A stretch of 63,748 bases of DNA, filler included, from Reticulomyxa filosa (GCA_000512085.1; 13 parts of 13 records of this genome joined end to end with filler, not necessarily neighbours in it); one strand, 5' to 3'; counted from the whole stretch's first letter, positions 1,044-7,804 are shown. Translations and numbers: made by a program. The notes: generated from the sequence alone by a model not told the origin.

Positions 1044-2782
1044 ATGACCGCATTTGATATATTGTCGGAAATATTGGATTTTTTGGAAAAAAAAACACGA
1101 CCACGCCTGCAAATAGGGGATATAAAAAAGTTTCCAGACAGTTGGCAACAAGCAGCAGATTTGCTTCATTCGGAATGGCCAGAGTTGTTTCCCAAATCAC
1201 TTCCAAGTAAAGTTCGAGAAAGTATCACCTCTTCAGAAGAATTTCCGCAACGAGTCATAGTGGTTGAGAACAATGATAACGGTAATTTCCAAGTAATTGG
1301 TCATGTAAAGATTACAAAAGGAAATGATCTGAGCCACGGAATAGCTGTCAACGTCTGGGACGTGTTAATCGACAAACAGAGGAGAAATCAAGGGATTGGA
1401 TCATTATTAATGAAACATGTGGAAAAAGGTAACCACTTTTTTTAAAAATAAGCCCATTTATGTTTGAATTTTTTTAAATACTCCCCTTTTCTCCATCCTT
1501 CCTTTCTGACTTTCTTTTAAAATGTGGAATGAAAAATCGGGATACGAAATTGAACCTTTGGCAAGTTGTATATGAGAAGGGATATTCTCACATTTATTTG
1601 TGCACGCGAACAGCGAGCAAATTTTACGAGCATTTGGGTTATAAACATTGCAATAAACAGAAGGCTACAGAGTATCGTTTGCGAAGGAACCGCAAACGAC
1701 TGAATGTATCTCAGCTCAGTTCATTGGAATCAATGCTCAATGCAAAAAAAACGAAAAACAATAAAGATCTTGCCAATACAACAGCTAAAAAAGCTGAAAA
1801 AAAGAACAACCAACATTGCACTGTATCTAAAAATGATGGTGGTGGCAATAATGATGATGATGGCAGTGGTGGTGATGACAATGACGGTAATGATTGTGAT
1901 GCTAGACAAATACCGGATACAGATGAAGATATTTGGTATTTTAAAAAATTGAGAATGCTTATGCCTCCGACTTGGAGAAATGCAAGTGCATGGATGGGTT
2001 CAATTCGAAATCAATTTCAACTTTGCTATGGTGGCCGTGGTGAGATGATATACCATACTTACAATATGCCATGGGTGGAACAAATTGGGCCTTGCTGTGG
2101 CTTTGCTGCACTTGCTATGATGGAATATTTTGCAATGCAAGGCAGATCTTCCTTGGCTAGCAAAACATATGATTTGGTATTAACCAATACTGTGATGAAA
2201 TATGCATTGGACAATGGATACACAAAATGTGGTGAATTATTTGATCTCGAGCAATATTTGTGGCTATGCAATTTGTTTTTACTTGAAAGTAAAGTTAATA
2301 TAATGAACATGAGTCTTGAAGACTGTTCTGTGTCCAATCTTACCACATTTGTTCACTCTTGGATGGAAAAGAAGGAAGAGGTTTTGAATATCTTTGATTC
2401 TGACTGTCCTTGCTTGATTGTTCCTTATTGGAAAGATAGTACTGGTAGGCCTACTATCCAAGAGGATTCTCAGATTGGACGTTCAGACATAAATCTTTCT
2501 TCCGATTCCTGTTCTTCGAATCGTGATCATGTGCTCCCTGTGGCCTCAAGAGCACATTATCTTGTTATTTGTGGTGCTATTCGTGTAAGCGCAGCCCAAG
2601 AAGATAATAGCTATGGTTGGCTGATTGGTACACATTCCTCCAAATTTTCTCCTGTTGTCGTTTCTGTAAAGGATTTGGTTCAATCCAACGCCTTGCTTAA
2701 AGGCAAGTGTGTTCCCAAGTGGGCAATGAACAAATACAATTTATGTGGAAAAATGATTTCTGTAAAGTTTTCTTCCAAATAG
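1044..2782 (+). CDS. NAA80-like GNAT acetyltransferase fused to ACTMAP (C19orf54)-like papain-fold cysteine protease; 2 exons (1044-1428, 1566-2782), 533 aa
   Basis: A phase-1 GT-AG intron at 1429-1565 joins the two ORFs in frame. GNAT motifs: AADLLHSEWP, VIGHVKI, VLIDKQRRNQGIGSLLM, GYSHIYLCT..KFYEHLGY, terminal strand IWYFKKL. Protease motifs: EQIGPCCGFAALAM, GYTKCGELF, LIVPYWKD, RAHYLVICG, LVQSNALL. Confidence 0.85.
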
Positions 2783-3329: not shown

Positions 3330-5031
3330 CTAAAACAAATGGAACAATAATCCTAAAATAATCCCTATGTTGATGAAAGACGAAGCATAAAGTGCAGATG
3401 CAGTCGCGTAAGGTAAAGGATAGCTGTCAAGATCCCAATCCTGCGAGGAACATGAAGAATTGTTATCATTTTCTTCAGCACAAGAAAGTTCAGCGCACGC
3501 TTCTTCAAAATCCATATCACCATTTTCATAAAGTAGACATGTACTTGCGGCCCATATCCAATCTGAAAACAAAAACAAAAACATACAAATTCCTTTTTTT
3601 TGCCTATCCTTTAGAAAAAAAAATTCATTTAATGATAATACAGTATATTACCTGAATAATATCCCACTGAAGTATAAACTCCTGGTACATTATCAGCACA
3701 ACTGTGCAAGAAAAAAAGTACAACAAACACACTAAAAAGGAAGACAAAGCCAATGAAAAACAAAAGTTACCCAGATCCCCAGCTCACAATTCCAACTTGT
3801 GGTATGTTCTGCTCTTTTTCTTTAAGCAACGGACCTCCACTGTCACCTTTTTCAAATCGTATGCACCTTTTCTTATGATCGAGTTTGGATTTTTGTCAAA
3901 AAAAAATTGCAACAGATAAATAAACAATGCATCAAACCCTGGCAAGCGTCTTTTGTTGATGAATACGCACAAATCATGCCAGGTTTGATATATTGTCTAT
4001 CAGGATGAACCGTTGTCCAATTTACTTTTGTAAAATCAAATTTAAAGGGATTTTCAGTCCTTGAATTATAATATGCCGTCCATAAATAAAACCATTTGTT
4101 ACATATGTCTACTTGCAATTATGTTTAGTATTGCAATACAATGAGTTTTAAATTGAGTTCTTTAAATTTTTTAAACTTGTGTACCTGCCGGAATGTAAGA
4201 TAAATCAGCATATTCCAAATAACCAGTTATCGCTCGATTCGTTTCTCTAGAGCCATATCCTAAGACTCGCACGGTTTCACTTTCATTGCAGCATGCATCG
4301 TCTAATCACATGTAGTTGGATAAGATGTTGGTAGCTTAAAAAAATTGTTGTTTTTGTTGTAGGCATAAGATTGCAGTAACTTGTGAAAAGATGAATTGAT
4401 GCTATTTGTGACATTTGAATGTTGTAATCCAATATAATTACGCCGATGTCATTTTCAAAAGATGTACTATTGTAATATTTATGATATTTTGCATCTTTCC
4501 AAGGAACGGTAATATATCCTTGCTCCGAGGTATCTTGAACATCGCTTCGGCCAATGGTTGCATAGAATACAAACTCCTATTTTTTTATTTGATTTCTCTC
4601 TAAGTTTTTCAGGTACTTATGAATCAACAAAATAAATAAAGCAAAAGATGAACTTCGCCTGTTTGCGAGTAAAACTCTTCTTTTATTCCCTCTATGCAAT
4701 GAGCAGCGGTCTATTCATTTTTGGCAAAATCACTCCAAACTGAAGTTAGAGTGTAACATTGCAAAAGCAGACATACCAAAACAAGTGGAGGGTTTGCATG
4801 GCGGATCAATGTTCCACCACAAAAAACAAGTGATTCATAGTTTTTGGATTGAGCACTTAATGCCACTATCCATTTGTAATTGCTTGCAGATATCGTTATT
4901 CCATTGACGATGCGATTATCACCTTTTTGTTCAATCTCCGTGGAAAATAGCTTTGAATTAAATAGCGATATATTTTCCCCTGAAATATCATATATCAACA
5001 ACATTAACCACCAAAAACAGTGGACCAACAT
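3330..5031 (-). CDS. Trypsin-family (S1A) serine protease, multi-exon, with signal peptide and C-terminal hydrophobic anchor
   Basis: Hydrophobic N-terminus, R|IVNG activation site, FCGGTLI, TAAHC (exon starting 4710), NDIG (~4445-4465), KDACQ-GDSGGP (~3830-3950), IVSWGSG, PGVYT, hydrophobic C-terminus FINIGIILGLLFHLF. Confidence 0.92.

Positions 5032-5561: not shown

Positions 5562-7804
<2,243 letters not shown>

Follow-up and report, generated by a model that had tools for sequence, protein, structure and literature searches.

The window analysed here is a stretch of 63,748 nucleotides (nt) of DNA from the foraminiferan Reticulomyxa filosa (Rhizaria), and all positions given below are those of this whole stretch. 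At 1044–2782 on the + strand it carries one gene that, as read from the sequence, consists of two exons and encodes a predicted protein of 533 residues (amino acids, aa), in which an acetyltransferase domain of the GNAT family resembling NAA80 is followed by a cysteine protease domain of the ACTMAP family. In animals, these two activities belong to the maturation of the actin N-terminus. The features recognised in the gene are as follows.

1044..1428, + strand: exon 1 of 128 codons plus 1 base, covering two thirds of the GNAT domain from its N-terminus, with a match to Acetyltransf_1
1176..1178, + strand: Trp of the SEWP motif, equivalent to W36 of Drosophila NAA80 (DmNAA80) by alignment to the structure 5wjd; Trp in 99% of the family
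1380..1400, + strand: acetyl-CoA binding motif RRNQGIG (R/Q-x-x-G-x-G), assigned from alignments
1429..1565, + strand: intron of 137 nt, GT (1429–1430)..AG (1564–1565), with stops in all three frames and a GC fraction of 0.31
1566..2782, + strand: exon 2, which contains the last part of the GNAT domain, the linker, the protease domain and the stop codon at 2780–2782
1580..1651, + strand: C-terminal GNAT core GYSHIYLCT ... FYEHLGYKHC, which corresponds in alignments to the block G-Y-x-Y-x-Y-L-W-T ... F-Y-x-K-x-G-Y seen in the fusion family and in NAA80
1700..1750, + strand: inter-domain motif L-x(7)-L-E-x-x-L, conserved in 88–98% of relatives
1751..1927, + strand: low-complexity linker rich in N, D, G and K, specific to the R. 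filosa copy
1928..1951, + strand: DIWYFKKL, corresponding to the family motif D-[VI]-W-[LM]-R-K-R-L, with its Trp 96–99% conserved; it may be the last GNAT strand
2072..2101, + strand: WVEQIGPCCG, with the oxyanion-hole Gln at 2081–2083 and the predicted nucleophile Cys at 2096–2098; the motif lies inside the PF21646 match
2216..2242, + strand: GYTKCGELF (G-E-x-F motif), with Cys in place of the family Asp before G-E
2417..2437, + strand: IVPYWKD (family P-Y-D), with Trp (2429–2431) in place of the invariant Asp
2438..2551, + strand: insertion of 38 residues preceding the His strand, where the model has low confidence (predicted local distance difference test, pLDDT, below 50 at domain residues 178–194)
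2552..2560, + strand: AHY, with the predicted catalytic His at 2555–2557; the His is invariant
2681..2698, + strand: QSNALL, with the invariant Ser-Asn pair at 2684–2689, assigned from the alignment

The ATG at 1044–1046 is the first of the upstream open reading frame (ORF), and an in-frame stop is located 32 codons 5' of it. Joined together, the coding parts of the two exons (385 + 1214 nt) make up 533 codons, in agreement with the preliminary description of this DNA, which had proposed a canonical intron at this place. The GC fraction of the flanking coding parts (0.38–0.39) is higher than that of the intron, and GT..AG borders were also found at two other introns of the same genome, belonging to an actin gene and to the neighbouring helicase gene. 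In the multiple alignment with uninterrupted relatives, the end of exon 1 and the start of exon 2 fall into adjacent columns, and splicing gives exactly the distance that separates the conserved L-E from the G-Y in the family. When compared pairwise with an uninterrupted relative of 424 aa (P0005), exon 1 corresponds to residues 2–86 and exon 2 to residues 92–394; if the residues left unaligned at the ends and the codon divided by the intron are taken into account, the exons are contiguous on P0005, with no gap at the junction. All searches and fold predictions described below were run exon by exon or on natural relatives rather than on the joined 533-residue protein.

The fusion of the two domains is independent of this splice, as the preliminary description had also pointed out: the ORF at 1529–2782 is unbroken and runs from GYSHIYLCT..FYEHLGY through DIWYFKKL to the end of the protease domain, and elsewhere both domains are found in single ORFs and in complete transcripts. 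A protein of 417 aa deposited in NCBI, UniRef and EukProt is identical to this ORF. Its start ATG therefore lies inside the intron, and two thirds of the GNAT domain, on its N-terminal side, are left out, so that the public gene model for the locus is probably wrong. Taken at face value, the deposited protein would agree with a different structure of the locus, namely two adjacent genes or an assembly artefact, in which a truncated GNAT ORF (945–1445) stands beside a separate protease starting from Met 1529; it should be mentioned here that the 1428/1566 junction is predicted from genomic sequence and homology. We consider such an arrangement extremely improbable. A protease gene starting at 1529 would open with the last third of a GNAT domain, whose missing two thirds are added with the exact spacing by exon 1; the segment between them has a high AT content, contains many stops and has GT and AG at its ends; and about 80 relatives possess both domains in one ORF or transcript.

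The GNAT domain is composed of exon 1 and the first 28 codons of exon 2. Exon 1 matched positions 1–86 of the 116 positions of the Pfam model Acetyltransf_1 (E 4e-8), and its top match in the PDB was DmNAA80 (5wjd; E 7e-6), with human NAA80 also among the matches. The GNAT tail of exon 2, searched alone, gave no match to PDB sequences. For the complete GNAT domain of the relative P0005, the top match was human NAA80 (E 8e-8), followed by Drosophila NAA80. A profile built from 11 GNAT domains of the fusion family and the two pieces from the R. filosa gene was run against the PDB, so that the ranking of NAA80 versus other GNATs covers solved structures; it placed DmNAA80 (2.3e-21) and human NAA80 (1.4e-19) before the next GNAT (2.6e-11), with NAA50, NAA60 and NAA20 found at 6e-7 to 1e-3. 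A language-model feature search of the Atlas returned arthropod clusters at the top, one of them named N-alpha-acetyltransferase 80. The proposal that this half follows NAA80 and not other GNAT families thus agrees with all three kinds of search (PDB, profile and feature), and by sequence comparison animal NAA80 (NatH) enzymes are its closest characterised relatives.

In DmNAA80, W36 and R43 bind D2 of the actin peptide and are essential, the W36A replacement abolishing activity, while K73 and S88 bind D3 and are contributing residues (PMC5924903). According to the alignment to 5wjd, the corresponding residues of the R. filosa protein are Trp, Lys, Lys and Asp; across the family the position equivalent to K73 is Arg in 86% of cases. 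Compared with the solved animal enzymes (PDB 5wjd, 6nas), the R. filosa domain has in common (i) the GNAT fold, with DmNAA80 ten orders of magnitude ahead of any other GNAT in the profile search, (ii) the acetyl-CoA motif and (iii), in part, the residues binding the acidic residues 2 and 3 of actin, with the Trp and K73 kept and R43 represented by Lys. It differs from them in being the N-terminal half of a larger protein and in coming from a non-animal organism. Vertebrate NAA80 contains a proline-rich insert that binds profilin, whereas the R. filosa linker (1751–1927) is free of polyproline; Drosophila NAA80 also has no proline-rich insert, so this insert does not define the family.

Turning to the second half, exon 2 matched the Pfam family PF21646 (ACTMAP-like_C) with 38.3 bits at a curated cut-off of 27, and the same family was matched by 18 of the 18 aligned relatives. 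The protease domain was modelled by AlphaFold (AF2) with an alignment of 18 sequences as input, which gave a pLDDT of 76 and a predicted template modelling score (pTM) of 0.79; the pLDDT of exon 2 without an alignment was 38. The best match of this model among the clusters of the ESM Atlas was a chordate “Actin maturation protease” (template modelling score 0.65/0.59 over 215 residues, root-mean-square deviation 3.3), followed by a Myxococcota cluster with PF21646 and by bacterial C39-like peptidases. Its structural neighbours in the PDB were weak papain-like folds, including Lpg2622, C39-like peptidases, staphopain and UfSP. Searches of PDB sequences with the protease domain or with its profile revealed no real match, from which we infer that no ACTMAP structure has been solved.

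In 119 relatives the oxyanion Gln, the G-P-x-C-G motif, the Gly of G-E-x-F, the Tyr of P-Y-D, the His of A-H-Y and the S-N pair are invariant, while the Glu and Phe of G-E-x-F are found in 99% and 95% of them, respectively. The R. filosa copy retains the Gln, G-P-x-C-G, G-E-x-F, the Tyr of P-Y-D, the His and S-N. Both predicted catalytic residues had been placed correctly in the preliminary description: the Cys codon at 2096–2098 is the second Cys of GPCCG and is family-invariant, and the His codon at 2555–2557 belongs to AHY. The nucleophile of human ACTMAP is C132 (PMC13367750), and the Cys at 2096–2098 is its predicted equivalent, as connected through the Pfam model. As judged from the Pfam score above the cut-off and from the fold nearest to chordate ACTMAP, the protease half belongs to the papain-like cysteine proteases, within which it falls into the ACTMAP family (PF21646) and not into another C39-like family. 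With animal ACTMAP (C19orf54) it appears to share PF21646, the nucleophile motif Q-x-G-P-x-C-G, the His and, in the predicted structures, the nearest cluster. In contrast to the animal protein, it is located behind a GNAT domain; the R. filosa copy also has the insert of 38 residues before the His and lacks the Asp that is invariant in the P-Y-D motif of the fusion family.

We next consider the distribution of the same architecture. A word-indexed protein search with exon 2 alone found the R. filosa protein itself and nothing else. An exhaustive phmmer search detected proteins of 424–591 aa whose C-terminal half carried the protease match, and Pfam confirmed the presence of GNAT plus PF21646 in them. 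Profile searches extended the family to about 100 relatives, roughly four in five of which have both domains in the same order. The relatives without GNAT are mostly from short contigs and start at or just before the inter-domain motif, and most of these single-domain relatives look truncated. The named members are diatoms (Cylindrotheca closterium, C. fusiformis, Epithemia, Nitzschia, Mayamaea and a Bacillariaceae metagenome-assembled genome), while most other relatives come from metagenome and Logan sources. Two relatives are each encoded by one unbroken ORF, on eukaryotic contigs 81 kb and 12 kb long, where the neighbouring genes include N-myristoyltransferase, a DEAH helicase and IFT122. 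Three diatom members are complete MMETSP or EukProt transcripts, therefore outside R. filosa the fusion is transcribed as one mRNA. The protein of C. closterium (P0060) bears the automatic UniRef name “Actin maturation protease”.

The scan of bacterial and archaeal species genomes for the family signature revealed none with tblastn support, and a recent bacterial origin or contamination was rejected, as no relative was confirmed in the prokaryotic genomes scanned. The fusion of the NAA80–ACTMAP type thus recurs in roughly 80 relatives as one ORF or transcript, and the searches found the same architecture in diatoms and many uncultured protists; the preliminary description had placed the fusion in a non-animal protist. 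The R. filosa gene is a fast-evolving member of this large two-domain family. With the other protist fusions (e.g., P0060) it shares the domain order, L-E-x-x-L, D-V-W-L-R-K-R-L and the catalytic motifs; it differs from them in having one intron, the low-complexity linker, the replacement of Asp by Trp and a long branch. It should be mentioned that one relative (P0097, 557 aa) represents a second architecture, with PDZ_6 (PF17820) instead of GNAT before the ACTMAP-like domain.

Fusions of a GNAT with a DUF3335/C39 peptidase are also numerous in Pseudomonadota, according to the Atlas clusters. The bacterial GNAT/peptidase C39 proteins (DUF3335, PF11814) resemble the R. filosa protein in that an acetyltransferase is followed by a papain-like peptidase of the C39 type, and they stood at the top in another language-model feature search. 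However, PF11814 was not matched at E up to 5 in the 18 family members scanned, and Peptidase_C39 gave a weak match in 5 of 18 relatives (best E 1e-3) and none in the R. filosa protein. Any relationship to these bacterial fusions would lie at the superfamily level at most. It is possible that the bacterial GNAT–C39 fusions and the Myxococcota PF21646 proteins represent the deep origin of the eukaryotic pair; no link at the sequence level was found between them. Plants offer another parallel, since AMPP2 and GNAT7 mature the large subunit of Rubisco, RbcL (PMC13557074). That system is likewise a trim-then-acetylate pathway for one very abundant protein, but it relies on two separate, unrelated enzymes in the plastid and has another substrate.

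Several observations weigh against the reading of the R. filosa protein as an NAA80-like and ACTMAP-like fusion that acts on actin: (i) the pairwise match of exon 1 to the relatives is weak (E 0.03); (ii) the positions matching E87/S88 of DmNAA80 are occupied by Trp/Asp, which is a further difference from the animal enzyme; (iii) the kinship of the protease half to animal ACTMAP is drawn from a Pfam model and a predicted fold; (iv) Trp stands at 2429–2431 where 119 of 119 relatives have the Asp of P-Y-D; (v) the residue before AHY is Ala, while all relatives have Gly at the same position; and (vi) the terminal branch of the R. filosa protein is 3.66 substitutions per site versus a median of 0.47, i.e., about 8 times longer. 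In addition, the Asp before G-E-x-F, which is replaced by Cys in the R. filosa copy, is 97% conserved. In the tree the protein is sister to P0005, P0003 and P0002, and it is 22–29% identical to other family members. In the AF2 model the position of the P-Y-D Asp is at the end of the strand preceding the His strand, and this Asp could be a third catalytic residue. Because the invariant Asp and Gly are replaced and the branch is long, the activity of the protease in the R. filosa copy may be reduced or altered.

Carried further, the same replacements and the same branch would mean that the fusion is real but that the R. filosa copy has degenerated, with a protease that is inactive or serves for substrate binding, and with the acetyltransferase as the working half. 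The loss of a plausible third catalytic residue, as placed by the model, is consistent with such degeneration. We nevertheless find it unlikely. The Gln, Cys, His and Ser-Asn are all intact, and the long ORF is free of stops; some cysteine proteases work with a Cys-His dyad alone, which can be enough. Moreover, the gene is the sole ACTMAP-like gene in the genome, while the actins of R. filosa have N-termini that can be processed. Concerning the branch length, foraminiferan proteins are described as fast-evolving in general (PMC3079666).

Inspection of the genome for possible substrates revealed more than 100 matches to the actin family on many contigs (e.g., L002–L034). PF21646 was matched once in the genome, and one GNAT of the NAA80-like kind was found, both of them in the gene at 1044–2782. 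Each actin gene of this genome is interrupted by an intron. The readable actin N-termini are MDEDT, MDGEE, MDETN, MDEEE, MDEK, MEE or MSED, and these acidic N-termini are of the kinds processed by the animal pathway. The actin of Dictyostelium was reportedly shown in the 1980s to undergo the same processing. Among the actin-family matches of R. filosa the N-termini are very diverse (e.g., MDEDT, MDGEE, MDEEEYEEYEE, MSEDKE, MEELQI, MDFSRV); should the fusion enzyme act on actin, it would process some of the paralogues but not all.

On these grounds we regard it as quite probable that the R. filosa gene encodes a bifunctional NAA80-like/ACTMAP-like protein that completes the two-step maturation of actin in one polypeptide. 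The analysis shows which domains are present and in which order, that their catalytic motifs are conserved and that the fusion recurs, and an action on actin is probable from the sequence comparisons. The following sequence of events can be proposed. The N-terminus of actin (Met-Asp/Glu-acidic or Met-Ser-Glu-Asp) would be acetylated co-translationally by NatB or NatA. The protease domain, through the Gln at 2081–2083, the Cys at 2096–2098 and the His at 2555–2557, would then remove the acetylated Met, or the acetylated Ser or Ala after removal of Met. Finally, the tethered GNAT domain, in which the Trp is kept and Lys is present at both basic positions (R43, K73), would acetylate the exposed Asp or Glu. 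In animals both NAA80 and ACTMAP associate with profilin–actin (PMC11735805), and the covalent fusion might provide the proximity that the animal enzymes get in this way.

One may ask whether actin is the substrate at all. The function of the family is predicted from sequence, and it could trim and re-acetylate the N-terminus of another protein, and its likeness to NAA80 and ACTMAP would then reflect common ancestry only. In agreement with this, bacteria are rich in fusions of GNAT with C39-like (DUF3335) peptidases of unknown role, PF21646 is present in some Myxococcota proteins, and NAA80 accepts many acidic N-termini in vitro (PMC5924903). However, the residues with which DmNAA80 binds D2 and D3 of actin appear to be retained throughout the family or exchanged for similar ones, both halves are nearest to the actin-specific animal enzymes, the actins of R. 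filosa have the required acidic N-termini, and actin acetylated at the third residue was seen in a rhizarian (PMC9237673). For these reasons a substrate other than actin seems to us very unlikely, and actin remains the preferred one. In that rhizarian, Paulinella, the acetylation of actin at Glu3 was detected by mass spectrometry, and the authors inferred the existence of “NatH in Cercozoa” (PMC9237673). The fusion protein is a candidate for this postulated enzyme.

NatH/NAA80, ACTMAP and the two-step maturation of actin are described in current reviews as restricted to animals (PMC11735805, PMC13557074), in the latter case as recently as 2026. As diatoms and other protists commonly possess this fusion, the pathway probably extends far beyond the animals to which it has been assigned, and the fusion challenges the textbook view of actin N-terminal maturation. 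The conserved fusion of relatives of ACTMAP and NAA80 is also a Rosetta-stone link, which independently ties the two enzymes into one pathway. A more far-reaching hypothesis, which we put forward tentatively and with some doubt, is that the pathway is an old eukaryotic one, in which a bifunctional enzyme of the stramenopile–alveolate–rhizarian (SAR) group passes the actin N-terminus from its protease site to its acetyltransferase site, and that the separate animal genes arose by a split of the ancestral fusion. It becomes possible to test at what point the processing of actin evolved, if there is a physical coupling of cleavage to acetylation, and what role processed actin plays in cells with extreme cytoskeletal dynamics. 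In addition, the deposited gene model at the locus is corrected.

As for novelty, we found neither non-animal homologues of ACTMAP nor an NAA80–ACTMAP fusion described in the open literature mentioning ACTMAP, a scope to which the original ACTMAP paper does not belong. The architecture is visible in public databases and appears to be undescribed. The statement in the preliminary description that no account of such a fusion was known holds in so far as no describing paper was found, but the R. filosa gene is not a lone case, and its family was already present, unremarked, in public databases.

Besides the fusion gene, the window contains several other genes and possible exons. A gene of a DEAH-box RNA helicase is located at 5562–7783 on the − strand; it has at least 4 exons with GT..AG introns between them, contains the domains DEAD, Helicase_C, HA2_N/HA2_C and OB_NTP_bind, and runs off the edge of its piece. 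An intron of this gene includes a (TG)n microsatellite (about 6915–6950, − strand), which is the source of a spurious 'VCVCVCV' sequence in two overlapping ORFs. A DEAH helicase is also found near the fusion gene on the contig of P0005 (L035:3361-5870), in a different orientation and position. The synteny with P0005 was dropped as evidence of orthology, because an identity of 55% over the DEAH core cannot show it.

An ORF at 4711–5031 on the − strand with the motifs IVNG...W-x-V-x-L...F-C-G-G-T-L-I looks like the N-terminal end of an S1 (trypsin-like) serine protease; Pfam gave no match for it at E 0.01 or better. Finally, two short Cys-rich ORFs (C-x2-C ... C-x2-C) are located at 69–588 on the − strand, one of them with a weak match to PHD_2 (E 0.002), and they are probably exons of a PHD-finger gene that runs off the left edge.

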